IMG/VR virus record: IMGVR_UViG_3300032236_001613
Location: 186,001-250,000 of that record
DNA length: 64,000 bases
Strand: one strand, 5' to 3'
Part shown: positions 2,904 through 17,999 of the stretch, in pieces
How positions within the stretch are numbered: the stretch's first letter is position 1
Layout of the letters: each line of letters opens with the position of its first letter
Notes under the pieces: model-generated
The model's input: only the letters and a program-made list of their open reading frames with translations
What the model was told of the DNA's origin: nothing
The model's database searches: none
Position numbers and translations under genes: made by a program

Positions 2904-4031
2904 ATGTCTAATCACGGTCTAAAATATTTTACTCGAGAAAACTGTTTAATAAACAATAATGAAAAAATCGAAGATATATACTCATTTAAAAAGTTTCCAA
3001 TTTTTATAAATTGTACCAGTGATGAAGATAACTTAAACGATCAATTTTATGATATGAACTGGGGTATCTCTGAATCAGGACATTTACAATTGATAGACTT
3101 GTTAAACCCTACACTAATTTATTCTAACTATCACACTACCGGAGTAGTTGGTAAAATTTGGGATAATCACCATAAAAAAATATTCGATTTTATAAATCAA
3201 GATAATTTTAATAGTGTTTTAGAAATTGGCGGCGCTAGCGGTAAGCTGGTAAAACATTTTTGTAATCTTAATAGAGAATTTAATTGGTCAATTATTGAAC
3301 CTTCGATCAAATTGTCAACCATTGATCATCGAGTGACATGCATATCGGCATTTTTTGAAGATTATTCTTTTAATAAAAAGTTTGATACAATAGTGCATTC
3401 TCATTGCTTAGAACATGTATACAATCCTATTGTTTTTCTTAATAAAGTACACTCTTTACTTAACGACAATGGATACCAATATATTTCTATACCTAATATG
3501 AAATATGGATTAGAAAATAACTTTACTAATACTTTAAGTTTTGAGCATACTTTTTATATTGATGAATTTGTTTTAGAGTACTTACTAAATAAAACAGGGT
3601 TTATAGTTGTAGACAAAATAGTAGAAAACCATTCGATTTTTGTTAAAGCTAAAAAACAGAATAAATTGAATATATTACAAAAGGACTTTTTGTATATTAA
3701 AGAACTATTTTACAAATATATGTCTAATTTAAACAATGATGTTGTTACAATTAATTCAAAAATTAAGGATCAAAACTTTTATTTGTTCGGCGCACATATG
3801 TTTTCTTTATTATTATTAAATCTCGGATTGTACAACAAGAATATTGAATGTATTCTAGATAACGATACACAAAAGCAAAATAAAAGATTATATGGTACAC
3901 CGTATTTTGTAAAATCTATAGATTGTTTGAAAAATAAAGAATCACCTATTGTTGTTTTAAGAGCTGGAATTTATACTGATGAAATTAAAGAATCGATAGC
4001 AAAAGTCAATTCAACAACAATTTTTATATAA
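2904..4031 (+). CDS. Class I SAM-dependent (sugar C-methyltransferase-like) methyltransferase
   Basis: VLEIGGASG, FDTIVHSHCLEHV, FEH, C-terminal LFGA/ILDND domain. Confidence 0.8.
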   Translation: MSNHGLKYFTRENCLINNNEKIEDIYSFKKFPIFINCTSDEDNLNDQFYDMNWGISESGHLQLIDLLNPTLIYSNYHTTGVVGKIWDNHHKKIFDFINQDNFNSVLEIGGASGKLVKHFCNLNREFNWSIIEPSIKLSTIDHRVTCISAFFEDYSFNKKFDTIVHSHCLEHVYNPIVFLNKVHSLLNDNGYQYISIPNMKYGLENNFTNTLSFEHTFYIDEFVLEYLLNKTGFIVVDKIVENHSIFVKAKKQNKLNILQKDFLYIKELFYKYMSNLNNDVVTINSKIKDQNFYLFGAHMFSLLLLNLGLYNKNIECILDNDTQKQNKRLYGTPYFVKSIDCLKNKESPIVVLRAGIYTDEIKESIAKVNSTTIFI

Positions 4032-6550: not shown

Positions 6551-7678
6551 ATGGATACCGTACAGAGAAACAATGATATTGTTTATAATAATAATGATTT
6601 AGAGCTCTTATATACATTTAAAAAATTCCCGGTATTTATGGGATGTACAGAACAAGAAATTAAAGACGATGTTTACTATGATTTAAATTTTTTTATCAGC
6701 CGTAAAAGCGGAATGATACAAATAAATCCAGTTGCACCGTTAGAACTAGTGTATCAGACAGAGCATCAATCCGGAGCAGTCGGAGCTGGTTGGTTTAAAC
6801 ATCATAACACATTTGCTAAATTTATAAAAGATTATAATCCTTGCAATGTATTTGAAATTGGCGGCGGACATGGATATTTAAGTAATGAATACTATACGTT
6901 AGATAGCAAAATAAATTGGACTATGATAGAACCTAATCCTTCTATTGTTGAATCTAATGCTACTGTTATTAAAGGATTTTTTAAAACTGTAGATCAGATA
7001 CCCAATCCAGTTGATGCAGTAGTTCATAGTCATTTCTTCGAGCATTTACATTATCCTGCTCAATTTGTTCAAATCTTGTCTTGTTTAAAGAACGGTATAA
7101 AAGTATTTTTTAGTATTCCTGATCTTAAAAAACAACTGGAACAAAAATATACTAATGTATTAAACTTCGAACATACATTTTATTGTACCGACGACTACGT
7201 CGAATGGATTTGGAATCACTATGGATTTAAACTATTAAAAAAGATTTATTTTGAAAACGGACATAGCATTTTTTATGCATTTGAAAAACAAGATACTACA
7301 AACACAGCCGAATATATTAATTCATATGAAACAAATAAAACTATATACTTAAACTATATTGATTATTACAAGAATTTGGTTAAAGATTTAAACAAGAGAA
7401 TTGAAGAAGAAACTAGCCCTGTTTTTATTTTCGGAGCCCATGCATCAACACAGTATCTACTTGCTTATGGCCTAAATGCTGATAAAATTAATGGAATTAT
7501 TGATAATAGTTCTCTTAAAGAAGGTAAACGTTTGTACGGAACTAAGTTTATAAGTCAAAAAACAAGTATATTAAAGGAAATTGAAAACCCTGTAGTAATA
7601 GTACGTGTAGGTATACAAAACGACGAAATTAAAAAAGATATATTAAAAAATATTAATTCAAATGTTACTTTTATTTAA
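6551..7678 (+). CDS. Class I SAM-dependent methyltransferase, paralog of 2904..4031
   Basis: VFEIGGGHG, VVHSHFFEH, FEH, IFGA, IIDNS, KRLYGT. Confidence 0.8.
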   Translation: MDTVQRNNDIVYNNNDLELLYTFKKFPVFMGCTEQEIKDDVYYDLNFFISRKSGMIQINPVAPLELVYQTEHQSGAVGAGWFKHHNTFAKFIKDYNPCNVFEIGGGHGYLSNEYYTLDSKINWTMIEPNPSIVESNATVIKGFFKTVDQIPNPVDAVVHSHFFEHLHYPAQFVQILSCLKNGIKVFFSIPDLKKQLEQKYTNVLNFEHTFYCTDDYVEWIWNHYGFKLLKKIYFENGHSIFYAFEKQDTTNTAEYINSYETNKTIYLNYIDYYKNLVKDLNKRIEEETSPVFIFGAHASTQYLLAYGLNADKINGIIDNSSLKEGKRLYGTKFISQKTSILKEIENPVVIVRVGIQNDEIKKDILKNINSNVTFI

Positions 7679-8407: not shown

Positions 8408-8485
8408 GCTCCCATAGTTTAGAAGGGCCCAGAACATCCGATTCTCAGTCGGAAAACGCAGGTTCGAATCCTGCCGGGAGCGCCA
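8408..8485 (+). tRNA. tRNA-Glu(CTC)
   Basis: TCCGA-TTCTCAG-TCGGA, CCA. Confidence 0.9.
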
Positions 8486-8529
8486 TTTTACTTAATAAAT
8501 ATTACAAATTTTAAAATAAAGGGTTACTA

Positions 8530-9135
8530 ATGAATATCTCAGATTACAAACAATTTATAAAAGATACAGGCACTTTAATACAAATTGGTGCTTTTGATGG
8601 TGTTGCTTGCGAAGACTCAGGGTTTAGAGAATTAGTACTTTATAAAAATTATAATGCTCATTTGGTTGAACCAGTTATAGATTTTTTTCAGGCGTTACAA
8701 AAAAACTATAGTAATGCTACGAGTAATGTTCGATTTTATAATCAAGCAATTTATACAGAAAATGGAGAATTACCTTTTTTTAAAAATTACACTGACCCAT
8801 TACAATGTACTTTTATAAGAGAAAATGTAGCTGAATATCATGGGCAAACAATACTAGTACAGTCACGAACTTTTGATACTTTTTTACAAGAAAATAACAT
8901 TAATGAAATCGAAGGATTATTTATTGATGCAGAAGGTGCCGAAGATACTATACTCCAACAGCTTTTTGAAAAAACGAATATCAGACCTAATATAATTCGT
9001 TATGAATGGCCACATTTGCCTGACCCTGTAAACACAATCAGATACATTATGTCTTATGGCTATACTGTTTCTCCCTGCATCTATTCAGGCGGTCGTGTTG
9101 ATAACATTTGTATTAAAAACGACCTTTTAGTTTAA
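8530..9135 (+). CDS. FkbM-family methyltransferase
   Basis: IQIGAFDG, LVEP, LFIDAEGAE, IRYE. Confidence 0.8.
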   Translation: MNISDYKQFIKDTGTLIQIGAFDGVACEDSGFRELVLYKNYNAHLVEPVIDFFQALQKNYSNATSNVRFYNQAIYTENGELPFFKNYTDPLQCTFIRENVAEYHGQTILVQSRTFDTFLQENNINEIEGLFIDAEGAEDTILQQLFEKTNIRPNIIRYEWPHLPDPVNTIRYIMSYGYTVSPCIYSGGRVDNICIKNDLLV

Positions 9136-9139
9136 TCTC

Positions 9140-9214
9140 GGTTCCATAGTATATCGGTTAATACATCGGCTTGTCACGTCGAAGTGAGGGGTTCGATTCC
9201 CCTTGGAACCGCCA
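9140..9214 (+). tRNA. tRNA-Asp(GTC)
   Basis: TCGGC-TTGTCAC-GTCGA, G73, CCA. Confidence 0.92.
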
Positions 9215-9219
9215 AATAT

Positions 9220-9295
9220 GCCATCTTAGCTCAGTTGGTAGAGCAGCAGACTGAAAATCTGCGTGTCCCCGGTTCAATTCCGGGAGATGGTACCA
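9220..9295 (+). tRNA. tRNA-Phe(GAA)
   Basis: GCAGA-CTGAAAA-TCTGC, CCA. Confidence 0.95.
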
Positions 9296-9299
9296 GTTA

Positions 9300-10020
9300 T
9301 TATGCCCATCTCCCGTGATCAAAGCTATTGTCAGGGTTTTTAAATTTTCTTAAAGATGATTCTATTCCGGTTACCGGCCACGATATGTGATTTTTATATA
9401 AATGATATATCAACATGTTTTGTGGAGTAAAACACACTCCTTCGGTTGTATATTGATCAATATAATTAAAAACAGACGAATATATGGACATGACATCGCT
9501 ATTGCCTATAGCAAACTGATCGTTTATCCCTGCTCCTTGTCTTTCGGTATCTGGTGTTATTATCATTGGTGTGTTTATACGGTCAAGGTATTCTTTAACT
9601 TTATTTAAAAATATGTAATTATTTAAGCATAAATCTGGCCTTGCTCTAATCACTAAATCATATTTGCCAAACATAGCTTCGTATTTTTGTCTAATATGAC
9701 CAACACGTTGTACGCCATTAAACATATACCAAGCATGAGAGGCCCATGTATGAGTACTATGAGGTCCGCCTAAAATATATGGTTTAGTTTCATCAAATAT
9801 AGGTTCGGGTACAATATCAAAATGAACTACATAATTATTTTTTGGTAAATTATTAACCAATTTAACATAAAACTCATGTTTGTTATTATTCCAACTAGGA
9901 GGAACCCCTTTATCAATGGAATTGTTAGAATTCCAAACATGTATAAACCAATCTAATTGATCATAGATCAAAATCCTTAGTAAACCTCGGTCGACCTGAT
10001 AATTCAATTGCTACTTTCAT
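9300..10020 (-). pseudogene. Frameshifted putative glycosyltransferase-like gene
   Basis: ATG 10020 gives MKVAIELSGRPRFTKDFDL*; the body (YDLVIRARPDL, INDQFAIG) is in another frame. Confidence 0.6.
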
Positions 10021-10045
10021 GCGACTATTTATTGTTAGAGTTTAT

Positions 10046-10122
10046 GGGGCCATAACTCAATAGGCTAGAGTAACTGGCTTTTAACCAGTAAGTTGTGAGT
10101 TCGAGCCTCACTGGCCCTACCA
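10046..10122 (+). tRNA. tRNA-Lys(TTT)
   Basis: ACTGG-CTTTTAA-CCAGT, CCA. Confidence 0.93.
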
Positions 10123-10129
10123 TTTCAAT

Positions 10130-10206
10130 GCCTCCGTAACTCAATGGATCAGAGTGCTTGGCTTCGAACCAAGAAGTTGGGAGTTCGAATCTCTCCGGGG
10201 GCGCCA
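10130..10206 (+). tRNA. tRNA-Arg(TCG)
   Basis: CTTGG-CTTCGAA-CCAAG, CCA. Confidence 0.93.
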
Positions 10207-10261
10207 TATTACGTGATAAGTAAACAGCAGACAGTTTACAGAAACACAAAGGAGATTTTTA

Positions 10262-10843
10262 ATGAATAAGTTTATTGTTTCGATTATTGCCGGACTTGCT
10301 TTTGCGAATCTTGCAGTAGCCGCGGATTATGCTGGTGTTGATTATCAAGATAAGCAGAAGGTCGACGTTGCTGAACAACACGATGTATTTGGTGCTTATA
10401 TTGGACATAAGTTTTCTGACACAGGATTCTCTGTTGAAGGACGCTTAGAAAATGAAATTGTGCATGATCCTAGTAAGCATGAAGGGCTCGTTCAGGTAAA
10501 AGGAACTTATAATGTACCTGCAGCAATTCTAGAAGTTTATCCTTATGTCAGCGCCACAGTTGGCTATAAGAGCGAAGCAACTAGTAATTTTGATTTTTAT
10601 GTTTTAGAAACGGGATTAAAGTATACCCAACTACCTAACGTAGAACTACGTTATGGACTACGTCTACGTACTCCGTTTAACGAAAGTTCGGTAGGCGAAG
10701 GCAACCATTACCGTACAGTAGAAAATAGCATCAACGCCGTTTATAAACTAGACAGTCATAATGGCGTTACTTTAAAATATGCACGTGAGCATGGTGATAG
10801 CAATTATCACACTTACGGTGTTGGTCTAGTACACTCCTTCTAA
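10262..10843 (+). CDS. Outer-membrane beta-barrel (porin-like) protein
   Basis: Signal peptide ending AVA, alternating beta-strand pattern, C-terminal YGVGLVHSF. Confidence 0.7.
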   Translation: MNKFIVSIIAGLAFANLAVAADYAGVDYQDKQKVDVAEQHDVFGAYIGHKFSDTGFSVEGRLENEIVHDPSKHEGLVQVKGTYNVPAAILEVYPYVSATVGYKSEATSNFDFYVLETGLKYTQLPNVELRYGLRLRTPFNESSVGEGNHYRTVENSINAVYKLDSHNGVTLKYAREHGDSNYHTYGVGLVHSF

Positions 10844-10847
10844 TCAT

Positions 10848-11297
10848 ATGGCAATAATTGCAGCCTTATTATGTCTGCTAGGCTGGTTTTTGCCATTAAC
10901 AGATTATCTAACTCCTAAATCAGGAGTAGGTTATTGGATGGGTATAGTAGGAGCGTCCATGATGCTCCTACTTTTAACTTATAGTCTGCGAAAACGTTAT
11001 AAATTCTTAGATTGGTCACCCCCACTTAGTAAGTGGTTTAATGCACACATATTTTTAGGTCTATATGGGCCTTTATTAATCTTATATCATTGCGGCTATC
11101 ATTTAGGTGCTTTTAATAGTAATATGGCTTTATGGTCGATGATTATAGTTGCTATTAGCGGAGTTATAGGTAGATTTTTATATAATCGTCCTCAATTTAA
11201 AAAAGCATTCGCTATTTGGCATGTGGCACATTTGCCTTTTGTTTTTATGTTAGCTGCAGCAGCAGTTATACATATACTTGCAGTAAACATATATTAA
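10848..11297 (+). CDS. His-containing multi-pass membrane protein (possible heme b ligands)
   Basis: Hydrophobic helices with WFNAHIFLG, LYH, WHVAHLP, IH. Confidence 0.55.
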   Translation: MAIIAALLCLLGWFLPLTDYLTPKSGVGYWMGIVGASMMLLLLTYSLRKRYKFLDWSPPLSKWFNAHIFLGLYGPLLILYHCGYHLGAFNSNMALWSMIIVAISGVIGRFLYNRPQFKKAFAIWHVAHLPFVFMLAAAAVIHILAVNIY

Positions 11298-11305
11298 AAA
11301 CGTAT

Positions 11306-11381
11306 GGTGGCTATAGTGTAGAGGTTCGCACACTAGGTTGTGGCCCTGGTAGTAAGGGTTCAATTCCCTTTAGTCACCCCA
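11306..11381 (+). tRNA. tRNA-His(GTG)
   Basis: G-1:C73, CTAGG-TTGTGGC-CCTGG, CCA. Confidence 0.92.
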
Positions 11382-11447
11382 AATTATTTTTATAATTAGT
11401 CTAGGAATATAGATAATTTTCTCTTATAATTATCTATATAATTTTTC

Positions 11448-11537
11448 GGAAGTGTGGCAGAGTCCGGTTTATTGCAACAGTCTTGAAAACTGTCGAGTTT
11501 AATCGCTCCGTAGGTTCGAATCCTACTACTTCCGCCA
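11448..11537 (+). tRNA. tRNA-Ser(TGA)
   Basis: ACAGT-CTTGAAA-ACTGT, long variable arm, G73, CCA. Confidence 0.95.
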
Positions 11538-11541
11538 AATT

Positions 11542-11599
11542 TAGGATGCTTCCAGCAAATAAAAAACTTTTCTTGAAAAAAAGCCAAAACAGCATCCTG
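11542..11599 (+). ncRNA. Anticodon-display RNA copy 1 (TGA stem-loop)
   Basis: AGGATGCT/AGCATCCT closing stem, CAGCAA, internal CTTTT-CTTGAAA-AAAAG. Confidence 0.7.
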
Positions 11600-11609
11600 T
11601 TTAATTTTA

Positions 11610-11704
11610 CCTCGATAGCACAGGTGTGCGGCTAGGTCTTATAAACCTGGGAGAGTTGCCAGATTAGCGACAACGGGAAGGATCGTTACCTTCATCGAGG
11701 ACCA
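11610..11704 (+). tRNA. Non-canonical tRNA with TAT anticodon and long variable arm
   Basis: CCTCGAT/ATCGAGG-A-CCA; 6-bp stem CTAGGT-CTTATAA-ACCTGG; T-loop ATCGTTA. Confidence 0.75.
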
Positions 11705-11712
11705 AATTTTAG

Positions 11713-11741
11713 TTGACTAATTGGTAAATGCGTGTTAAAGT
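11713..11741 (+). promoter_or_regulatory. Sigma70-type promoter with extended -10
   Basis: TTGACT-N17-(TGt)TAAAGT. Confidence 0.6.
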
Positions 11742-11751
11742 ATACGCATAC

Positions 11752-11780
11752 GCTAAGAAATTAGCAACGCTCTTTAATAA
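11752..11780 (+). promoter_or_regulatory. rrn-type boxB/boxA antitermination site
   Basis: GCTAA-GAAA-TTAGC hairpin followed by CGCTCTTTAATAA. Confidence 0.7.
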
Positions 11781-11795
11781 ATGAAAATAGTTTAT

Positions 11796-11871
11796 GGTCC
11801 CATCATCTAGAGGCCTAGGATATTGCCCTTTCACGGCAAGTACACGGGTTCAAATCCCGTTGGGACTACCA
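11796..11871 (+). tRNA. tRNA-Glu(TTC)
   Basis: TTGCC-CTTTCAC-GGCAA, CCA. Confidence 0.93.
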
Positions 11872-11908
11872 TACTTTTTAACTAAATATCTAGCTACGGA
11901 GAAATACT

Positions 11909-12364
11909 ATGAGCTTTCTAGACGTTTTCAAGAAAGAAAAAGACAAGCTAGTTGAAGAAGTTACTAAAGTCGAATCTACTGTTGTCGAAGAAGTAAAGAA
12001 AGTAGAAGCAGTGGCTGAACGAGCTGTTGCTGCTACCGAAGCAGTAGTTAAAGAAGTTGTAGTAGATTTTGAAAAGATTTTAACAGAAGCCGAGCAGGCA
12101 GCAGAAAGAACTCTACGCGATGTAGAGTTAGCTCGCCAGTTATACGAAAAAGCACTGGCTAGAGCAAATCTAGCAGCTAATAGAGCTAGAGAAGCTGCTG
12201 AACAAGCAGCAGCAAAAGCCCAAGAAGAAGCTGAAAGAGCCTTGTTGAGAGCTGAACGTGCTGCTAAGTTAGTGATTGGTATTTCAGGATCGGCGCCAGC
12301 TCCGGTTATTGCGCCTCCACCAATCGCTCCTGCTCCACCCCCTACAAGTAATACTACTCAATAA
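11909..12364 (+). CDS. Ala/Glu-rich coiled-coil protein with Pro-rich tail
   Basis: Composition; GGAG SD. Confidence 0.6.
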   Translation: MSFLDVFKKEKDKLVEEVTKVESTVVEEVKKVEAVAERAVAATEAVVKEVVVDFEKILTEAEQAAERTLRDVELARQLYEKALARANLAANRAREAAEQAAAKAQEEAERALLRAERAAKLVIGISGSAPAPVIAPPPIAPAPPPTSNTTQ

Positions 12365-12366
12365 TT

Positions 12367-12442
12367 AGTAGTGTAGCATAGTGGCTAATGCAGCACCTTC
12401 ATACGGTGTTTACCATCGGTTCGAGTCCGATCACTACTACCA
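12367..12442 (+). tRNA. tRNA-CAT (elongator Met or Ile2)
   Basis: GCACC-TTCATAC-GGTGT, paired 1:72, CCA. Confidence 0.88.
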
Positions 12443-12446
12443 GTTT

Positions 12447-12561
12447 TAGGATACCTACAGCAACATAAATTACTCATGCTAAGAGAGAGGTCGTTGGTTC
12501 AAGTCCAACCTAGTCTTAGGACTAGTAGCTCAGTTGGTAGAGCACTAAAATGTGTATCCTG
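12447..12561 (+). ncRNA. Anticodon-display RNA copy 2 containing a circularly permuted tRNA (GCT loop)
   Basis: AGGATAC/GTATCCT closing stem; order is anticodon loop, variable loop, T arm, loop-closed acceptor stem, D arm. Confidence 0.8.
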
Positions 12562-12570
12562 TTTTATTCG

Positions 12571-12648
12571 GCACCGGTGGCAGAGTGGCCCAATGCAAGA
12601 GTCTGCAAAACTCTAAAGTCGTCAGTTCGAATCTGACCCGGTGCTCCA
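12571..12648 (+). tRNA. tRNA-Cys(GCA)
   Basis: AGAGT-CTGCAAA-ACTCT, U73, CCA. Confidence 0.93.
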
Positions 12649-12697
12649 ATATACTTGTATAATAGATAACAAACATATATAATATATGAAATTATAC

Positions 12698-12773
12698 GGC
12701 CTCGTAGCCTAGTGGATCAGGCAACAGCCTTCTAAGCTGTCTTACACAGGTTCGAATCCTGTCGAGGTCGCCA
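12698..12773 (+). tRNA. tRNA-Arg(TCT)
   Basis: ACAGC-CTTCTAA-GCTGT, CCA. Confidence 0.93.
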
Positions 12774-12824
12774 AATTAATTAGTTTGACATCTTAATAAA
12801 GATAAGTAATAATATATCAACAAC

Positions 12825-12898
12825 GCGGAATTGGCATATGGGTTGTGCTCCAGCCTTCCAAGCTGGCTAAACGAGTTCGAGTCTCGTATTCCGCTCCA
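12825..12898 (+). tRNA. tRNA-Gly(TCC)
   Basis: CCAGC-CTTCCAA-GCTGG, U73, CCA; TTGACA at 12785 upstream. Confidence 0.93.
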
Positions 12899-12915
12899 AC
12901 TTTTAAGAGGCTCTA

Positions 12916-13134
12916 ATGAATAATCTCGGTGAATTAAGAGATTACGCTGTTGCTCGAGGATATAAAATCAAAGAGTTTAACGGATATGCACTACATATTG
13001 GGCGTGATACTTATACTATGTTAGCTGGAGAAATTTATCTCAATAAGATTAAAACTCCTACTAAAGAAGTTTTAAAGAAATTTACAGAAAAGTCTGCTGC
13101 AAAAAAAACTGCAGCAACAGCAAAGAAAAAATAG
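12916..13134 (+). CDS. Hypothetical basic protein
   Basis: ORF with GAGG SD. Confidence 0.55.
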   Translation: MNNLGELRDYAVARGYKIKEFNGYALHIGRDTYTMLAGEIYLNKIKTPTKEVLKKFTEKSAAKKTAATAKKK

Positions 13135-13140
13135 TTTTGT

Positions 13141-13221
13141 GCCCTAATGGTGAAATTGGTAGACACGCAAGATTTAGGTTCTTGTCTTCGGGTGGGGGTT
13201 CGAGTCCCTCTTAGGGCACCA
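13141..13221 (+). tRNA. tRNA-Leu(TAG)
   Basis: CAAGA-TTTAGGT-TCTTG, short variable arm, A73, CCA. Confidence 0.92.
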
Positions 13222-13228
13222 ATAGTTT

Positions 13229-13289
13229 TAGGATGCCTACAGCAAATTTAAAAATCAAAATGTCAATTTGAAAACAAATGCGCATCCTG
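13229..13289 (+). ncRNA. Anticodon-display RNA copy 3 (GTC stem-loop)
   Basis: AGGATGC/GCATCCT closing stem, CTACAGCAA, internal TCAAA-ATGTCAA-TTTGA. Confidence 0.7.
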
Positions 13290-13298
13290 TTTAAATAT

Positions 13299-13372
13299 GC
13301 CGGTGTAGTATAATGATAGTGCGACGGTCTCCAAAACCGTTAGTGGGAGTTTGATTCTCTCCACCGGTGCCA
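13299..13372 (+). tRNA. tRNA-Trp(CCA)
   Basis: ACGGT-CTCCAAA-ACCGT, CCA. Confidence 0.92.
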
Positions 13373-13384
13373 AATCGAGGACTT

Positions 13385-13699
13385 ATGACAAAAAAATTTA
13401 CATTTAATGATTTACAACCTAGAGTTGAAATGCTAATCGATGCTCTAGAAAATCGTGGCGCTTGTGCTAGCGGCTTACCATATGCTCCGGGCGTTAAAGC
13501 AGTTGCTGAAAACTATAAGTCAATGTTAGATTTTATAAGAAATAAAACAATTAACAAAGACGATCTCATCAACAGTTTATCAACAGCTAAAGCACTTGTA
13601 TTAGAACGAGCAGGTGGTAATCAAATTGATAGAATACGTAAAATTCTAGATGCTCTTGACTCCTATATGATGAGAGAGTATAATAAACAGAACAGTTGA
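13385..13699 (+). CDS. Hypothetical protein
   Basis: GAGG SD before ATG 13385. Confidence 0.55.
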   Translation: MTKKFTFNDLQPRVEMLIDALENRGACASGLPYAPGVKAVAENYKSMLDFIRNKTINKDDLINSLSTAKALVLERAGGNQIDRIRKILDALDSYMMREYNKQNS

Positions 13700-13721
13700 C
13701 CCTTCGTCTAGCGGTAGGACA
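13697..13721 (+). pseudogene. 5' remnant of a tRNA-Gln-like gene
   Basis: TGACCCT-TC-GTCT-AGCGGT-AGGAC-A: acceptor 5' strand plus Gln-type D arm, no 3' half. Confidence 0.65.
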
Positions 13722-13735
13722 AATATAAATACTAT

Positions 13736-14278
13736 ATGCTTAGTAAAAATATTAGTTCAGAGACAATCGAAAAATTAATTGATTCAGGTTTAAAAACCTC
13801 AGAAATTGCATCTAAGCTCGGTATCTCTACTGCAACAGTTTCTTATTGGAAAAAGAAACTCGGAAAAGAACTTAGTAATATCAAACATGATTGGAAAAAA
13901 ATTCAAGAAGCCCACAACAATGGGTCTACTTATTCTCAATTATACAAAGAGTTTGGTGTTACTAAAAGATCATTACAGAAAGCTAGAGATCGAGGAGATT
14001 TCAAGGTTAGACAGCGTAAAAAATTGTCAAAAGATGACGCTAAAATTAGAAAAAGAATTATATGCAGAGAAGCGTGGATGCGGTATTATAGTAGAAAAAA
14101 ATATCAAACTCCGGCTGATGAAGATATTAAAAAATTACAAGAATTTTATGCTAATTGCCCGGTTGGTTATGAAGTAGATCACATCATACCTATAAGTAAA
14201 GGCGGATTACATACATTGTCGAATCTTCAATACTTAACTATTAAAGAGAATAGACAAAAAGGTAATAAGATATTATAA
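13736..14278 (+). CDS. HTH-HNH homing endonuclease
   Basis: N-terminal SEIASKLGISTATVSYW; YEVDHIIPISKGGLHTLSNLQYLTIKENRQK. Confidence 0.88.
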   Translation: MLSKNISSETIEKLIDSGLKTSEIASKLGISTATVSYWKKKLGKELSNIKHDWKKIQEAHNNGSTYSQLYKEFGVTKRSLQKARDRGDFKVRQRKKLSKDDAKIRKRIICREAWMRYYSRKKYQTPADEDIKKLQEFYANCPVGYEVDHIIPISKGGLHTLSNLQYLTIKENRQKGNKIL

Positions 14279-14289
14279 TTTAACACTAT

Positions 14290-14363
14290 TGGGGAATCTT
14301 CTAACGGCAGGAAGGCGGACTTTGACTCCGCTAATCTAGGTTCGAATCCTAGTTCCCCAGCCA
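14290..14363 (+). tRNA. tRNA-Gln(TTG)
   Basis: GCGGA-CTTTGAC-TCCGC, U1:A72, CCA. Confidence 0.93.
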
Positions 14364-14369
14364 ATTTTT

Positions 14370-14443
14370 GCCCGATTAGCTCAAAAGTAGAGCGCACGAC
14401 TGATAATCGTAAGACAAAGGAGCGTTACCTTTATTGGGCACCA
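14370..14443 (+). tRNA. tRNA-Ile(GAT) with atypical D and T loops
   Basis: CACGA-CTGATAA-TCGTA; T-loop AGCGTTA; CCA. Confidence 0.85.
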
Positions 14444-14459
14444 TATAAATAAAGACAAT

Positions 14460-14535
14460 TGGAGTGTAGCTCAGCGGCAGTAGCGTTCGCCTGTTAAGCG
14501 AATGGTCGTAGGTTCGATCCCTACCACTCCAGCCA
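14460..14535 (+). tRNA. tRNA-Asn(GTT)
   Basis: TTCGC-CTGTTAA-GCGAA, CCA. Confidence 0.92.
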
Positions 14536-14543
14536 AATTTTAG

Positions 14544-14572
14544 TTGACCATTTTCGAAATGTTCAATATAAT
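14544..14572 (+). promoter_or_regulatory. Sigma70-type promoter
   Basis: TTGACC-N17-TATAAT. Confidence 0.7.
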
Positions 14573-14601
14573 ATATTCAAGTTAGTAAATAGTTTCGCGT
14601 T

Positions 14602-14675
14602 GGGGGATTGATGTAGTGATAGCCTGGGACCCTTGCACGGTCTTCGCGAGAGTTTGATTCTCTCATCCTCCACCA
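14602..14675 (+). tRNA. tRNA-Ala(TGC)
   Basis: G3:U70, GGACC-CTTGCAC-GGTCT, CCA. Confidence 0.9.
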
Positions 14676-14683
14676 AAGTTTGA

Positions 14684-14757
14684 TGCAGGGTAGTAGAACG
14701 GAACTACGCTAGGCTCATAACCTAGAGAACTTGGTTCGACTCCAAGCTCTGCTTCCA
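14684..14757 (+). tRNA. tRNA-Met(CAT), initiator-like
   Basis: 1:72 mismatch, CTAGG-CTCATAA-CCTAG, CCA. Confidence 0.85.
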
Positions 14758-14766
14758 GTTTGAAAC

Positions 14767-14854
14767 GGATGGTTGCCTGAGCGGTTAAAGGAGCGGGTTG
14801 CTAACCCGTCGCGGTGAAAACTGCGCATAGGTTCGAATCCTATACCATCCGCCA
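14767..14854 (+). tRNA. tRNA-Ser(GCT)
   Basis: GCGGG-TTGCTAA-CCCGT, long variable arm, CCA. Confidence 0.94.
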
Positions 14855-14876
14855 ATTTGTTATATAGAGGAATAAA

Positions 14877-15092
14877 ATGCAAGAGTATAAGCCGACCGGT
14901 AGTTATCGTATGTCACGTCAAGCCAAGCAGATGTTATCTAGGATCCAGGATCCTATTGAGAGAACTGAAGCAAAACGTTTAATTATTCAAAGTGAGTTGC
15001 ATCTTCAGTTGACTCCTAAGCGTAATCCGCTTGATAAGGATCGCACAACTAAAAATAGTCGCAATAATAAAGACGACTCGTTAGAAGAGTAA
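14877..15092 (+). CDS. Hypothetical protein
   Basis: GAGGA SD. Confidence 0.55.
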   Translation: MQEYKPTGSYRMSRQAKQMLSRIQDPIERTEAKRLIIQSELHLQLTPKRNPLDKDRTTKNSRNNKDDSLEE

Positions 15093-15102
15093 ATAAAGTT
15101 AG

Positions 15103-15178
15103 GCCTTCTAAGCATTGCTGGCGATGCACCGGATTTGTAACCCGGGGATAGTCTGTTCGATTCAGACAGAAGGCACCA
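15103..15178 (+). tRNA. tRNA-Thr(TGT)
   Basis: GCCTTCT/AGAAGGC acceptor, loop TTTGTAA, CCA. Confidence 0.85.
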
Positions 15179-15182
15179 GTTT

Positions 15183-15286
15183 AGACGGACCTGTAACCAT
15201 ATTCCGTCTCCGCCGGAGCGAAAACAGGATGGGCTGCTGCCGCGGGGTTTGACTGTTTCCTGACACACAAATAACAGTCATGTGTT
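15183..15286 (+). ncRNA. Pseudoknotted structured RNA between tRNAs
   Basis: AGACGGA/TCCGTCT with CCTGT/ACAGG; GACTGTT/AACAGTC with ACACA/TGTGT. Confidence 0.6.
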
Positions 15287-15289
15287 TAT

Positions 15290-15364
15290 GCCCGGTTAGC
15301 TCAGGGGTAGAGCGTCTGGTTTACATCCAGAATGTCGGCGGTTCGAAACCGTCACCGGGTACCA
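15290..15364 (+). tRNA. tRNA-Val(TAC)
   Basis: TCTGG-TTTACAT-CCAGA, CCA. Confidence 0.94.
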
Positions 15365-15378
15365 GTTTAGTAAGGTCA

Positions 15379-15454
15379 CGGGGTGTAGCTCAGTCTGGTT
15401 TAGAGCGTCCGCTTTGGGAGCGGAAGGTCCAAAGTTCGAATCTTTGTACCCCGA
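15379..15454 (+). tRNA. tRNA-Pro(TGG), no encoded CCA
   Basis: TCCGC-TTTGGGA-GCGGA, C1:G72, followed by AAAA. Confidence 0.9.
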
Positions 15455-15469
15455 AAAATTAAATTTACA

Positions 15470-15901
15470 ATGAAAATAAAAATTACAGATCAAGATCCTG
15501 ACCGTCATAATCACATAGAATATCCTATGGAGATTGGAGGTCAGGCTTTTGCACCTGTAAAAATCGAAAAAGAAAAAGATCTTATGCTAGCTGTCGCACA
15601 ACTTAGCGCACAGCAAGAATATGATCGCATCATGGAATCTGTTTCTATATTACAACGGCAAGCACAAGCACTACAAAGAAGAATGCATTTAACAGAGATG
15701 GTACATGCTGCTAAGTTTAGTTTTGTGCCAATTCCGGGTAAAAGTTATTGGTTAGTCGAAGATACTAAAAAATCTCAAATTATTTTAACCCCAATGGGTC
15801 CATCAGATTGGAGTTGTTTGGCGCCTGAAGAATATAAGTATGTTGCATATGTACGTTGTTTAGGCGATCAAACCTGGCAAGAAATTATAGAGCCCGATTA
15901 G
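15470..15901 (+). CDS. Conserved hypothetical protein (DUF2452-like)
   Basis: YPMEIG..AFAP, AKFSFVPIPGKSYWL, MGPSDW, DQTW. Confidence 0.6.
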   Translation: MKIKITDQDPDRHNHIEYPMEIGGQAFAPVKIEKEKDLMLAVAQLSAQQEYDRIMESVSILQRQAQALQRRMHLTEMVHAAKFSFVPIPGKSYWLVEDTKKSQIILTPMGPSDWSCLAPEEYKYVAYVRCLGDQTWQEIIEPD

Positions 15902-15968
15902 CTCAGTTGGTAGTAGCAACTGATTAGTAATCAGTAGGTCGGCGGTTCGAATCCGTCATCGGGCACCA
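15892..15968 (+). tRNA. tRNA-Thr(AGT)
   Basis: ACTGA-TTAGTAA-TCAGT, CCA; overlaps the upstream CDS end. Confidence 0.9.
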
Positions 15969-16004
15969 TATAAGAAAGATATATACATTTAAGGAGACCA
16001 TATA

Positions 16005-16250
16005 ATGAGTAAAGGAAGTAGAACTAGACCATTGTCGGTCACTAGAAAAACGTTCGATAGTAATTGGGATCGAATTTTTGGAAAAAAGGAATATGATATG
16101 CAAATTAAAGTAAAAGAAGGATCCTTAGGCAGTTGTCCTTGCGGACGCAGTCCGATTAATCGCTGTGTTGGATGGCACAATCTCAACGAAGAGCAGTTAG
16201 CCAAAGCAAAGGCCGATTATGCAGCTAAAGAAGCAAAGAAAACTGCATGA
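16005..16250 (+). CDS. CDGSH-like iron-sulfur domain protein
   Basis: CPCGRSPINRCVGWH. Confidence 0.65.
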   Translation: MSKGSRTRPLSVTRKTFDSNWDRIFGKKEYDMQIKVKEGSLGSCPCGRSPINRCVGWHNLNEEQLAKAKADYAAKEAKKTA

Positions 16251-16651
16251 TAGAAAAAGTTGTAGTTAACGGCACGTTTGATATACTGCACTTAGGGCAT
16301 ATTAGACTTTTAGAATATGCTCGTGAGCTTGGATGGTATTTACTTGTCTTAATTGATTCAGATCGTAGAGTACAAGAACTTAAAGGCCCTACACGGCCGG
16401 TTAACAATCAAGAAGAAAGAGCCGAAATGCTTCGTGCTATTAAGTATGTTGACGAAGTGCAAATTTTTGACAGTGATGATGAATTAAGAAACCTTATTAA
16501 AGAATATCAGCCGGATTTTATGGTTAAAGGTAGTGATTACAGAAATCGTCCTATTATAGGTAGCGAATATTGTAAGGAAATTAAGTTTTATGAGTATATG
16601 GAAGGCTATTCGACCACAAAAAAAATATCAAGTATTATTGATAGGCGATAG
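16247..16651 (+). CDS. ADP-heptose synthase adenylyltransferase domain (RfaE/HldE domain II)
   Basis: NGTFDILHLGH, LKGPTRP, VKGSDY, YSTT. Confidence 0.9.
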   Translation: MIEKVVVNGTFDILHLGHIRLLEYARELGWYLLVLIDSDRRVQELKGPTRPVNNQEERAEMLRAIKYVDEVQIFDSDDELRNLIKEYQPDFMVKGSDYRNRPIIGSEYCKEIKFYEYMEGYSTTKKISSIIDRR

Positions 16652-17384
16652 TTGTACTGACGTTTATCAATACGGAACTGTGGATAGAATTAGTCCAGAA
16701 GCACCTGTACCTATTTTTAAACATAGTCATACAGAAACTAGGCCAGGAATGGCAGCAAACGTACAGTTGAATCTTGAATCGTTTGGAATCGAAGTTACAG
16801 CATTGCTAGGGCCTGGATCAGTAAAGACTAGGCTAGTTGATCTTCGTAGTCGGCAACATGTTCTTAGAATCGATGATGATGCTAACGCCACTCCTATGTT
16901 ATTCGATTCTAAACTTGATCTAACACACTATCATGCGGTAGTGTTTAGTGATTACAATAAAGGATGGGTTAGTTACGAATTAGTTGAAGTAGTACGACAA
17001 AAGTTCGGTGGACCAATTTTTATTGATACTAAAAAACAAGATCTAGCAAAATTTTGGGACTGTTATGTTAAAGTTAACGAAACTGAGTACAATAACAGAT
17101 GGTCTATCAATAATAAATTAATTGTTACATTAGGTAATCGAGGTGCAGTTTATAAAGAACTTGGTCGCAAAGAAGTAGAATTTCCACCAGACACAGTCGA
17201 GGTAGTAGATGTATGTGGTGCTGGAGACACATTTTTAGCAGCCATAGTTGCAGAATACTTAAATAGTAGAGATATTAATAGTGCAATAAAGTTTGCTAAC
17301 CATGCTAGTGCTATAAGTGTACAGCATAGCGGAGTTTATGCATTAACTCGAGAAGATATTAAGAAGATTAAAAAGCGGGTATGA
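16590..17384 (+). CDS. Heptose-7-phosphate kinase domain (RfaE/HldE domain I, PfkB family)
   Basis: RISPEAPVP, SDYNKG, DVCGAGDTF. Confidence 0.9.
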   Translation: MSIWKAIRPQKKYQVLLIGDSCTDVYQYGTVDRISPEAPVPIFKHSHTETRPGMAANVQLNLESFGIEVTALLGPGSVKTRLVDLRSRQHVLRIDDDANATPMLFDSKLDLTHYHAVVFSDYNKGWVSYELVEVVRQKFGGPIFIDTKKQDLAKFWDCYVKVNETEYNNRWSINNKLIVTLGNRGAVYKELGRKEVEFPPDTVEVVDVCGAGDTFLAAIVAEYLNSRDINSAIKFANHASAISVQHSGVYALTREDIKKIKKRV

Positions 17385-17397
17385 TGTAATCGAACCT
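17375..17397 (+). pseudogene. 5' remnant of a tRNA-Gly-like gene
   Basis: GCGGGTA-TG-ATGT-AATCG-AACCT with no 3' half. Confidence 0.5.
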
Positions 17398-17431
17398 TTG
17401 ACTTATATAAATAAGTATATAGGAGTACGAT

Positions 17432-17914
17432 ATGAAATATTGCCCGAAGTGTAATAATGAACATAATAAACCTGGAATGTTTTGCTCAAGATCATGTGCA
17501 AATAGTCGTGTTTGGTCAGAAGAGACCAATTTAAAAAGATCAATAACATCAAAGGGTAATTCCCCGTGGAATAAAGGTATATCCACCGGAATTAACGAAG
17601 AAAGAAATAAAGTTATACGATTAGTTCGATTGGAAAAAAATAGAAATAAATTTTTAAACGGGTTGATAACCGAAAGATCGGCAATAAGGAAACATCTTAC
17701 AAGAGAACATGGTTATTTCTGTTCTATTTGTTCTATTTCAGAATGGCAAGGACAAAAAATTACATTACAAGTAGATCATATAGATGGAAACGCAGGAAAC
17801 AATTTACCTACAAATCTAAGATTAATTTGTCCGAATTGTCATAGTCAAACTAAAACATTTGGAGCAAGAAATAAAGGTTCAGGAAGAGCATCTAGAGGTC
17901 TTCCGTTAAGTTAA
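17432..17914 (+). CDS. HNH homing endonuclease with N-terminal zinc finger
   Basis: CPKC..FCSRSC, PWNKG, LQVDHIDGNAGNNLPTNLRLICPNCH. Confidence 0.9.
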   Translation: MKYCPKCNNEHNKPGMFCSRSCANSRVWSEETNLKRSITSKGNSPWNKGISTGINEERNKVIRLVRLEKNRNKFLNGLITERSAIRKHLTREHGYFCSICSISEWQGQKITLQVDHIDGNAGNNLPTNLRLICPNCHSQTKTFGARNKGSGRASRGLPLS

Positions 17915-17924
17915 ATAATATATC

Positions 17925-17999
17925 GCGGGATTAATTCAGTGGTAGAATGCAACTTTGCCAAAGTTGATGTCACCGGTTCGAGCCCGGTATCCCGCTCCA
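17925..17999 (+). tRNA. tRNA-Gly(GCC)
   Basis: CAACT-TTGCCAA-AGTTG, U73, CCA. Confidence 0.94.

Follow-up and report, generated by a model that had tools for sequence, protein, structure and literature searches.

An HTH-HNH gene with a spare tRNA-Gln inside a tRNA-Gln gene of a giant freshwater phage: a likely homing-endonuclease cassette

Homing endonuclease genes usually spare their carrier, either by lying between genes or by residing in a self-splicing intron or intein. Here, we describe an endonuclease gene that lies inside a conserved gene with neither of these devices and brings a spare copy of that gene instead. How did it come to lie there, and is it a mobile unit that targets the very gene that it interrupts? 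The window analyzed is a stretch of 64,000 nt (IMG/VR record IMGVR_UViG_3300032236_001613, positions 186,001 to 250,000) from an uncultured giant freshwater phage with a 328-kb genome and a tRNA array; all coordinates below are window positions. A preliminary description had placed a truncated tRNA-Gln, an HTH-HNH gene, and a complete tRNA-Gln one after another in this region, and all of these elements proved correct to the base. The features of the locus are as follows.

13385..13699, + strand: ORF of 104 aa, unknown function; resident backbone, not part of the cassette
13656..13684, + strand: sigma-70-like promoter (TTGACT, 17 nt, TATAAT), 11/12 consensus positions
13697..13721, + strand: 5' relic (stump) of the resident tRNA-Gln(UUG), 25 nt, standard positions 1 to 26
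13722..13735, + strand: left end of the cassette, with TATAAATA at 13724-13731, 4 nt before the ATG
13736..14278, + strand: HTH-HNH endonuclease gene, 180 aa (Pfam, PHROGs), intact ORF with its own start and stop
14251..14279, + strand: sigma-70-like promoter (TAGACA, 17 nt, TATAAT), 11/12 consensus positions, function inferred
14290..14363, + strand: replacement tRNA-Gln(UUG), complete (ARAGORN, tRNA-Gln with anticodon TTG; Rfam tRNA, 58.1 bits)
14358..14363, + strand: right junction; homology resumes in CAGCCA, the final bases common to the old and new tRNAs
14370..14443, + strand: tRNA-Ile(GAU), intact, with an unusual T loop (Rfam tRNA, 54.5 bits; missed by ARAGORN)

Our main reading, which we regard as likely (probability of roughly 0.75), is that a free-standing homing-endonuclease cassette targets and overwrites the phage tRNA-Gln(UUG) gene; the cleavage that it requires is inferred. 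Since both the occupied and the empty alleles are in hand, the idea can be tested directly.

A resident tRNA-Gln gene replaced after position 26

The stump consists of the acceptor 5' strand TGACCCT, U8 and C9, a D stem of 4 bp (GTCT/GGAC) with a 7-nt loop, and A26, its first three nucleotides being the TGA stop codon of the 104-aa ORF. Within the window alone, it resembles the tRNA-Glu(TTC) of the phage more than the downstream tRNA-Gln. The earlier label of the stump as Gln type held, but it can be proven only through relatives, and a comparison restricted to the window would have mislabeled it as Glu-like. The stump is not a chance resemblance, because it is identical (25/25) to the first 25 nt of the intact tRNA-Gln found at the same position in relatives without the HNH gene and because its D-arm motif occurs only once in the 328-kb genome.

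These relatives, L180 and L181 (flanks 91 to 94% identical) and L182, lack the HNH gene at the corresponding site and have there a single intact tRNA-Gln, directly after the homologous upstream ORF. The earlier prediction for relatives without the HNH gene was a single intact tRNA-Gln beginning with TGACCCT, and all three fulfill it. Homologues of the 104-aa ORF (83 to 92% identical) are present in L180, L181, L182, and L017, while L015 and L016 lack it and have a tRNA-Trp abutting the stump. The HNH gene is thus polymorphic at one site, being present in the window and L017 and absent from L180, L181, and L182, and the ancestral state was the 104-aa ORF and, after it, a single intact tRNA-Gln.

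Homology to the empty-site contigs stops exactly at 13721 and resumes in the last bases of the new tRNA (window 14358-14404 matches L181 976-1021 at 97.9%). Between these points, 43 bp of the resident gene (nt 27 to 69) have been swapped for 636 bp containing a promoter-like motif, the HNH gene, and the new tRNA-Gln, and encoding nothing besides this gene and this tRNA. In the window, the resident tRNA-Gln has therefore been replaced after position 26 up to its last ca. 6 nt. We found no copy of the missing 3' part anywhere in the 328-kb genome, and the claim that the resident tRNA gene had been destroyed thus held. Among public metagenome contigs, X2 has the sequence up to 13721 joined to the anticodon stem of a Gln tRNA, X5 has a stump-type D arm joined to the anticodon stem of a Gln tRNA, and X4 is ca. 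97% identical up to 13721, after which it continues with a similar length of different sequence. The closest HNH donors (92% amino acid identity) have a stump with the acceptor TGAGGGA, for which HNH-free intact alleles exist as well (L183 and L184). As the stump of the window has the resident acceptor TGACCCT instead, it was derived from the recipient.

The HTH-HNH protein, its partner tRNA, and their promoters

The protein matches Pfam HTH_23 (1.3e-8) and HNH (25.6 bits, with a cutoff of 21.4), and PHROGs and Pfam together detect only HTH plus HNH. The AF2 model (pLDDT of 88.8) predicts two three-helix HTH modules, a long helix, and a beta-beta-alpha-metal HNH domain with putative strands at residues 145-149 and 164-168 and a helix at 169-174; PDB matches are to the HNH domains of Cas8-HNH and Cas9. 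Residues D148 H149, N163, and N172 are invariant in an alignment of 31 homologues. With this fold, the catalytic His, and the metal-binding residues, the protein qualifies as a His-Me finger (HNH) endonuclease, and its gene is under purifying selection (dN/dS ratio of 0.11 versus L015). Neither Pfam nor PHROGs found a GIY-YIG N-terminal domain (Seg family, SegB type). There is no self-splicing intron or intein around the HNH ORF, which is therefore free-standing; no Rfam intron family was detected at E values of up to 1 in window positions 13250-14600 or in L004 2850-3800, and the 636-bp insert contains neither a tyrosine or serine recombinase nor att repeats.

In 50,697 cultured-phage records, the best tblastn match to the HNH protein was only 32% identical, and megablast of the region gave nothing; its sensitive mode matched individual tRNAs only. 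Some T5-like matches to two tRNA-Gln genes turned out to be plain tandem tRNAs. A scan of genome contigs returned HNH-motif matches in cellular genomes only and no full-length homologue.

The replacement tRNA-Gln arrived together with the HNH gene: it is identical to that of the HNH-bearing L017 and shares only 49/76 positions with the resident allele (73/74 with L015). It has the acceptor TGGGGAA/TTCCCCA and the D stem TTCT/GGAA, versus GTCT/GGAC in the resident gene. Whether these differences protect it is another matter. The preliminary description had the enzyme cutting the intact allele and the replacement resisting cleavage; neither has been shown, nor has a cut position, and in the absence of cleavage data both remain inferences. 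As regards resistance, the sequence evidence is compatible but not uniform: among 13 distinct HNH-linked tRNA-Gln sequences, the D stem is changed in 11 and kept in 2 (L192 and L265, both with C26), which rules out the idea that every HNH-linked tRNA-Gln has an altered D stem. Moreover, L021 and L189 carry, in a single genome with the HNH gene, an intact tRNA-Gln(CUG) with a stump-type D arm (positions 1660-1733 in L021). Both observations indicate that the D arm alone is not the whole recognition site. The identity of the HNH protein correlates only weakly with that of the partner tRNA (Mantel r of 0.37; P of about 0.08), so the partner does not always travel with the enzyme.

The upstream sigma-70-like sequence lies ca. 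12 nt before the old tRNA-Gln start, in a stretch ca. 91% identical to the empty-site L181, and is probably the resident tRNA-Gln promoter, which would now read through the stump into the HNH gene (function inferred). No Shine-Dalgarno sequence precedes the HNH ATG. The TATAAATA motif, which is promoter-like and matches the T4 late-promoter consensus (its promoter role is unproven), is underrepresented as a word in the genome overall, but 18 of its 25 sites lie ≤40 nt before an ORF start. The HNH ORF contains the other sigma-70-like sequence near its 3' terminus, with 10 nt separating that sequence from the replacement tRNA. It seems likely, by inference, that the HNH gene is expressed from the captured tRNA promoter, the TATAAATA motif, or both, and that its expression is limited by tRNA processing just behind, or even within, the 3' end of the ORF.

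Recurrence of the layout and the case for homing

The same arrangement was found in every one of 14 distinct metagenomic contexts with a full-length HNH homologue: a stump, a TAAATA motif, the HNH gene, and a complete tRNA-Gln(TTG). The TAAATA core lies 3 to 11 nt ahead of the start codon in all 14, and the left junction is at tRNA position 25/26 in 12 of them, a constancy that hints only indirectly at cleavage of the HNH-free allele near this point. The upstream neighbors vary (tRNA-Trp, tRNA-Lys, tRNA-His, tRNA-Gln[CUG], and various ORFs), while the HNH family is associated with tRNA-Gln only, with its junction at the end of the D arm. The stump D arm tracks the enzyme lineage, being GTCT/GGAC where homologues share at least 55% identity and GCC/GGC in the lineage at 44 to 48%. 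Four contexts (L019, L020, L021, and L270) retain 3' relics of the old acceptor strand after the new tRNA. Given that presence or absence varies among close relatives and that 14 different neighborhoods are occupied, the unit is mobile, as had been claimed. Beyond this set, an exact-pattern scan of viral contigs for the junction gave, besides L004 and L005, only chance matches in unrelated small viruses, and a scan of viral contigs with the tRNA-Trp 3' end revealed no close relative.

The homing model that we favor can be set out as follows. In a sensitive tRNA-Gln gene, the bipartite HTH domain would read the region of the D arm and anticodon stem, leaving the HNH domain to nick or cut close to position 26/27. 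The left end of the break (nt 1 to 26) would then pair with the stump on a co-infecting donor genome and prime copying through the HNH gene and the donor tRNA-Gln, whereas capture of the right end would take place within the T arm, at the 3' end of the tRNA, or farther downstream. The recipient would retain a working tRNA-Gln, making the insertion a low-cost one, comparable to what splicing achieves for an intron-borne endonuclease. Protection of the new locus would come from two features, namely, a recognition site that ends up split at the stump and an incoming tRNA with a different D stem or a different base at position 26. Several points weigh against this reading: there are no cleavage data, so that the enzyme might cut elsewhere or merely nick; the D arm by itself cannot make up the recognition site; the partner tRNA does not always accompany the enzyme; the promoter role of TATAAATA is unproven; and the homology arms (25 nt and 9 to 13 nt) are short if unrelated phages are to recombine.

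Ordinary recombination between phage tRNA arrays, with the HNH gene as a passenger or with a packaging or defense role and not cutting tRNA-Gln, is the alternative with most in its favor, although we consider it unlikely. There is extensive mosaicism in phage tRNA arrays, as at the Arg, Gln, and Ile sites, where the window, L015, and L180 are not alike; the HNH gene and its partner tRNA are only loosely co-inherited, and there are no biochemical data for tRNA-Gln cleavage. This explanation does not, however, account for an HNH gene between a tRNA-Gln stump and a tRNA-Gln in 14/14 contexts, with the left junction at 25/26 in all but two, nor for the covariation of stump type with enzyme lineage, and the HTH-HNH architecture is typical of site-specific endonucleases. 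Much less probable still is a local duplication of tRNA-Gln (for instance, a SegB-type segmental amplification) in which the upstream copy decayed and the HNH gene lies between the former copies. SegB does yield tandem amplification of tRNA segments with truncated units (PMC13096335), and a partial and a full copy are indeed present in direct orientation. Nevertheless, the stump and the downstream tRNA are different alleles (acceptors TGACCCT and TGGGGAA), the empty site has a single tRNA, and the downstream tRNA equals that of other HNH-bearing phages and not the resident one.

It is equally hard to sustain that the HNH-free state is the derived one, the relatives having lost the cassette precisely and regained an intact gene. 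Homing cycles do include endonuclease loss, and L015 has a converted tRNA-Ile without its endonuclease. Against this, the matched acceptor TGACCCT/AGGGTCA could not be rebuilt without the 3' part except via an intact allele; as regain would need recombination with such an allele, the intact allele would still be the older state. Finally, the tRNA gene could be a split one or contain an intron, so that the stump would be its 5' exon or 5' half, to be connected to a 3' part in the RNA, with the HNH gene encoded in between. Group I introns with endonuclease ORFs do occur in bacterial and phage genes, including tRNA genes (PMC3984707), and in L019 the stump acceptor strand would pair with the 3' strand of the downstream tRNA. 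This possibility is all but excluded: no 3' half matching the stump acceptor exists anywhere in the genome, in the window, the downstream tRNA is complete, with a 3' strand unable to pair with TGACCCT, no intron family emerged from permissive Rfam scans of the window and L004, and the break is at position 26 and not in the anticodon loop.

The adjacent tRNA-Ile(GAU) of the window is the unoccupied allele of a second cassette site, which is occupied in L180 and L181. In L180, this site consists of the first ca. 35 nt of tRNA-Ile, a TATAAATAC motif, a 201-aa ORF, and a different tRNA-Ile, that is, a second cassette unrelated to that at tRNA-Gln but of the same design. The candidates for overwriting cassettes are, at present, the HTH-HNH gene at Gln, the nuclease-like 201-aa ORF at Ile (cassette at L180 3043-3757), and another HNH gene at the Arg site (L180 1081-1863).

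A bolder extension of the homing reading is possible but no more than that. In its first half, the stump would be a working part, a portable left homology arm giving entry to the tRNA-Gln gene of any phage whatever lies upstream, and possibly also a leader or operator for expression and self-control of the HTH-HNH gene. In its second half, a guild of isotype-specific "overwrite" cassettes, each destroying one tRNA gene and supplying a substitute, would turn over the tRNA arrays of freshwater jumbo phages. If this were true, introns and inteins would no longer be the only means by which an endonuclease gene can persist within a conserved gene; overwriting would be a third. Even without this extension, if the enzyme cuts the intact allele, it would be a natural DNA endonuclease recognizing a defined tRNA gene, and it would provide both a concrete mechanism for the rapid turnover and mosaicism of phage tRNA arrays and an explanation of why annotation pipelines come across partial tRNA genes in phage genomes.

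Comparison with known systems

Several known elements share part of this design. Integrase-driven islands and prophages insert into a tRNA gene and repair it by means of a duplicated end; as here, the target is a tRNA gene and a partial copy is left at one border. The unit described here, however, is only 0.64 kb, has no integrase or att-type repeats, duplicates the 5' end, replaces a whole functional gene, and sits in the tRNA array of a lytic jumbo phage. Intron-encoded endonucleases (I-HmuI-type HNH proteins in group I introns) also lie inside their target gene, split their site, and preserve the function of the target. In contrast to them, the cassette has no ribozyme or splicing, and function is kept via a second complete gene copy. 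Intron-less insertions are known too: mobE in nrdA of phage Aeh1 breaks a gene, and mitochondrial endonuclease ORFs bring along a replacement for the 3' end of atp6 or cox genes. These cases share with ours an endonuclease inside a gene without an intron, rescue of function by a new arrangement, and a displaced relic; they concern protein-coding genes, whereas the cassette described here has an entire tRNA gene as its target and leaves the 5' part as the relic.

Among phage tRNA genes, HNH-type ORFs have been described in the tRNA region of phage T5 (F-TflI and F-TflII) and in mycobacteriophage tRNA clusters (PMC2330249, PMC6409571). Like the gene in the window, they are HNH genes among phage tRNA genes, and they have been proposed as spreaders of tRNA repertoires; in the literature searched, no intra-tRNA insertion, stump, or isotype-specific pairing was described for them.

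The remaining system is T4 SegB, a free-standing GIY-YIG homing endonuclease encoded in the T4 tRNA gene cluster (PMC2330249; PMC13096335), which homes in tRNA arrays, where the flanking tRNA genes undergo co-conversion (PMC2330249). Both are free-standing endonuclease genes in a phage tRNA array, inherited with neighboring tRNA genes, and in both the ORF abuts a tRNA, so that tRNA processing may limit expression. SegB cuts inside the tRNA genes of phages without SegB, while cutting by the present enzyme is only inferred. SegB has no preference for any isotype and recognizes a generic motif in the T loop, at the 3' end of many tRNA genes. The HTH-HNH enzyme, by contrast, is found with tRNA-Gln(UUG) only, with its junction at the D-arm/anticodon-stem boundary, which speaks against T-loop recognition of the SegB type, albeit indirectly and without cleavage data. 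Also unlike SegB, the cassette leaves its target gene as a stump and replaces it with a spare copy. Thus, what is new with respect to SegB-like behavior is that the element is isotype specific, lies inside the gene, and compensates with a spare tRNA rather than by splicing.

Layout of the locus and its empty counterpart

The source record (328,068 bp, 37% G+C, estimated completeness of 92% in IMG/VR) is that of a jumbo tailed phage, given that the window codes for a T4-type family B DNA polymerase, tail-fibre and baseplate proteins, and an ATP-dependent protease. The public runs containing this sequence were freshwater and lake metagenomes. Of the 27 tRNA genes that ARAGORN detected genome-wide, 25 form an array at 8408-17999, and just one of the 27 is a tRNA-Gln. 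Within this array, a 95-nt tRNA-Ile(UAU) call (11610-11704, anticodon at position 31) has an odd length and layout and might be either miscalled or interrupted. Two 375-aa ORFs (2904-4031 and 6551-7678) both match phrog_37107 and phrog_24523, of unknown function, and are thus paralogues a few kilobases apart.

The preliminary description had placed at 13697-14363 an HNH gene between a broken tRNA-Gln 5' end and an intact tRNA-Gln, and sequence inspection confirmed this layout exactly.

Features of the tRNA-Gln locus (window coordinates)
13385-13699: 104-aa ORF, whose stop codon is the first three bases of the stump
13697-13721: tRNA stump, 25 nt, reading as tRNA positions 1-26
13724-13731: TATAAATA motif, with two A's between the stump and the motif
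13736-14278: HNH ORF, 180 aa, with Pfam HTH_23 (1.3e-8) and HNH above its curated cut-off; also matches HNH and endonuclease VII PHROGs
14290-14363: complete tRNA-Gln(TTG), 11 bases past the HNH stop (ARAGORN; Rfam, 58.1 bits)

The stump comprises the acceptor strand TGACCCT, U8 and C9, a GTCT/GGAC D stem, a 7-nt loop with the GG pair, and A26. Within the window, it is nearer to the phage tRNA-Glu(TTC) than to the downstream tRNA-Gln, so that its isotype could not be decided from the window alone. The TATAAATA motif, which matches the T4 late-promoter consensus, lies four bases from the HNH ATG; it is under-represented in the genome (25 sites versus ca. 62 expected), and 18 of the 25 sites fall within 40 nt 5' of an ORF. 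A strong sigma-70-like promoter (13656-13684) occupies the site expected for the resident tRNA-Gln promoter and, judging from sequence alone, may now transcribe through the stump into the HNH gene. Another (14251-14279), within the 3' end of the HNH gene, would serve the new tRNA ahead of which it lies. These two and a third at 14544-14572 are near consensus (11/12 positions), each 10 to 30 nt 5' of a tRNA start, suggesting that tRNA genes of the array might have individual host-type promoters.

Relatives were found by using the 104-aa ORF as an anchor, passing from its homologues to their contigs. In the HNH-free contigs L181 and L180, the anchor protein was 92% identical and the DNA flanks were 91 to 94% identical over window positions 11701-13721 and 15209-16300. 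Directly 3' of the ORF homologue, both carry an intact tRNA-Gln(TTG) (ARAGORN), the first 25 nt of which equal the stump and whose 3' acceptor strand (AGGGTCA) is complementary to TGACCCT. A further HNH-free contig, L182 (86%), carries a second intact allele, which shares these 25 nt and departs from the first allele in its anticodon stem. The preliminary description had named an intact tRNA-Gln in HNH-free relatives as the test of its idea, and this prediction held in all three. The BLAST match between the window and L181 stops exactly at 13721 and restarts at 14358, in the common terminal bases CAGCCA; the window has 636 bp (13722-14357) where L181 has 43 bp, corresponding to resident tRNA positions 27-69. 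The lost 3' part was absent from the whole 328-kb genome, in which we found generic T-loop matches only. Insertion with replacement is therefore shown.

In L180, a scaffold gap (N run, 2838-2944) with duplicated flanks lies exactly inside the tRNA-Gln gene, the assembler behaviour expected at a site polymorphic in the sampled population.

Recurrence of the cassette in other genomes

Searching 5.8 billion proteins returned 392 relatives of the HNH protein, ca. 48 of them full length at 44 to 92% identity; none exceeded 32% identity in cultured phages, and no full-length relative was found in cellular genomes. DNA was available for 14 distinct contexts (the window and contigs L015/L016, L017, L004/L005/L018, L019, L020, L021 with L100, L101, and L189-191, L022, L023, L186, L187/L188, L192/L193, L265-269, and L270-272). 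All 14 have a tRNA-Gln 5' stump directly before the HNH gene and a complete tRNA-Gln(TTG) directly after it, with a spacing ranging from 24 nt apart to a 65-nt overlap; in two cases, the HNH stop TGA forms the first three tRNA bases. The upstream neighbours vary (tRNA-Trp, tRNA-Lys, tRNA-His, tRNA-Gln(CUG), a methyltransferase ORF, a DUF1289 ORF, or the 104-aa ORF). The stump terminates at position 25 or 26 in 12 of the contexts, and 0 to 7 bases further on lies a TAAATA core, 3 to 11 nt 5' of the HNH start codon. The stumps of L020 and L265 retain the D arm only, and that of L023 extends into the anticodon stem. In four contexts (L019, L020, L021, and L270), a 3' acceptor-strand relic of 8 to 13 nt comes right after the new tRNA. 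Bordered by a 5' stump and, in these four, by remains of the old 3' end, the cassette occupies a former tRNA-Gln gene.

The closest relatives of the window HNH (92% amino acid and 89.5% nucleotide identity) are those of L015 and L017, and its replacement tRNA-Gln is identical to that of L017. The stumps of these two contigs begin TGAGGGA, a type found as an intact, HNH-free tRNA-Gln in L183/L184, while the window stump begins TGACCCT and shares its D loop with the L181 allele. Since the stump is of the L181 type and the HNH gene and tRNA are of the L015/L017 type, the stump is recipient DNA and the remainder incoming DNA.

Contigs assembled from four other freshwater runs were compared over 12800-15200; being metagenomic, they show that forms exist, not their frequency. 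In a contig of run X2, position 13721 is joined to a Gln-tRNA anticodon stem with two other letters in between, and in one of X5, a stump-type D-arm end is fused to this stem. A contig of X4, ca. 97% identical up to 13721, continues with ca. 690 unlike bases and matches again from 14367; it is a different version of the cassette sharing the left boundary. A second X5 contig has its right boundary within tRNA-Gln, at 14335.

Endonuclease, replacement tRNA, and proposed gene conversion

The AF2 model of the HNH protein (pLDDT, 88.8) predicts two three-helix HTH modules (8-41 and 53-86), a long helix (99-123), and a beta-beta-alpha HNH domain (145-174). Structure and sequence matches were to HNH domains of Cas8-HNH, Cas9, and a nicking HNH, as well as to bipartite HTH DNA binders. 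Residues D148, H149, N163, and N172 do not vary among 31 homologues, and dN/dS between the window and L015 genes was 0.11. The gene is intact and under constraint; cleavage itself is inferred.

We consider endonuclease-driven gene conversion the best reading of the cassette (probability of ca. 0.75). The enzyme would cut or nick a sensitive tRNA-Gln gene of a co-infecting phage near position 26/27, the left end of the break would invade the donor's stump, serving as a putative homology arm, copying would run through the HNH gene and then the donor tRNA, and the right end would be captured in the T arm, the 3' end, or the donor's 3' relic. Such a mechanism would explain why the left junction is constant, why the stump has a recipient-type acceptor, why a 3' relic is present in some contexts only, why the upstream neighbours vary, and how tRNA-Gln function is retained. 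Enzyme and partner-tRNA identities were weakly correlated (Mantel r, 0.37; p, ca. 0.08), indicating that crossovers often fall between the two. Regarding the earlier claim of a mobile cassette that destroys the resident gene, insertion and replacement, polymorphism, recurrence, and selection on the enzyme are shown, while cutting of the resident gene, like the cut site and the promoter roles, remains an inference.

Resistance of the replacement, also claimed in the preliminary description, is plausible and unproven. As the window and L017 have the same linked tRNA-Gln, the 14 contexts comprise 13 different sequences, and in 11 of these the D stem is altered by paired substitutions (TTCT/GGAA, GTTT/GAAC, ATCC/GGAT, GTGT/ACAC, and others). 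The other two (L192, with an 8-nt D loop, and L265) keep GTCT/GGAC and have C26, a position that is A or G in stumps and empty alleles. L021 and L189 also retain, next to the HNH gene, an intact tRNA-Gln(CUG) whose D arm is of the stump type (in L021, 1660-1733, 0.7 kb downstream of the stump and almost equal to it in the first 25 nt), so that recognition must extend past the D arm, in the direction of position 26 and the anticodon stem-loop. The divergence between stump and new tRNA could have another reason, namely, that an exact direct repeat would expose the HNH gene to deletion by recombination. Recognition of the D arm has a rival too. Throughout the homologues with an identity of 55% or more, the stump D arm is nearly constant (GTCT, 7-nt loop, GGAC), and it is GCC/GGC in L023 and L270, the two lineages furthest removed; a GCC/GGC D stem is that of Escherichia coli tRNA-Gln. 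This co-variation may reflect an enzyme reading the D arm, and common descent of both predicts the same pattern.

Other tRNA sites and comparison with known systems

Features at neighbouring tRNA sites
L180 3043-3757 (also L181 983-1051): second "overwrite" cassette, a tRNA-Ile 5' relic, TATAAATAC, and an ORF, with the new tRNA-Ile overlapping the ORF end
Window 14370-14443: intact, unoccupied tRNA-Ile(GAU) (Rfam, 54.5 bits), with an odd T loop and missed by ARAGORN
L015 3634-3748: substitute-type tRNA-Ile, with 33 nt from the 3' end of a window-type tRNA-Ile remaining behind it, without an endonuclease ORF

In L180 and L181, a tRNA-Ile(GAU) truncated after ca. 35 nt is followed by the TATAAATAC motif, a 201-aa ORF, and a different complete tRNA-Ile, so the same overwrite design recurs with another enzyme. 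This ORF has a Cys-rich N terminus and weak matches to the Holliday-junction resolvase phrog_9019 (1.6e-6) and PIN_4. The L015 site could be a converted one that lost its endonuclease. Over 12613-12767, where the window has tRNA-Arg(UCU), L180 (930-1876) has a 260-aa HNH homing endonuclease (phrog_655, 5e-43); the terminal bases TCGCCA alone are in common, and the 3' half of the adjacent tRNA-Cys differs too. The tRNA arrays compared here are mosaics of occupied and empty sites.

Two odd tRNA genes were also seen. One (L004, 3632-3727; Rfam, 54.9 bits), missed by ARAGORN, has an anticodon loop enlarged by ca. 24 nt and a TATAAATAC motif upstream. The other (L097, 1477-1600) has matching acceptor strands, a normal T arm, and, after a stump-type D arm, ca. 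50 extra nt that might be an intervening sequence or mark another interrupted tRNA.

The full-text literature searched, whose coverage is incomplete, did not describe any endonuclease gene that sits within one particular tRNA gene, leaves a stump of it, and brings a substitute. HNH genes are mentioned in tRNA clusters of T5 and mycobacteriophages (PMC2330249; PMC6409571). The cassette falls outside the Seg family, introns, and integrase islands. T4 SegB, a free-standing GIY-YIG enzyme encoded in a tRNA array, cuts a T-loop motif of many tRNA genes, without isotype preference, and is inherited with the neighbouring tRNAs (PMC2330249; PMC13096335). By analogy, and with cleavage inferred, the cassette would behave as free-standing endonuclease homing. 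It also resembles segB in having the ORF packed tightly against a tRNA, the maturation of which, in segB, is thought to cleave the mRNA at its stop codon (PMC2330249).
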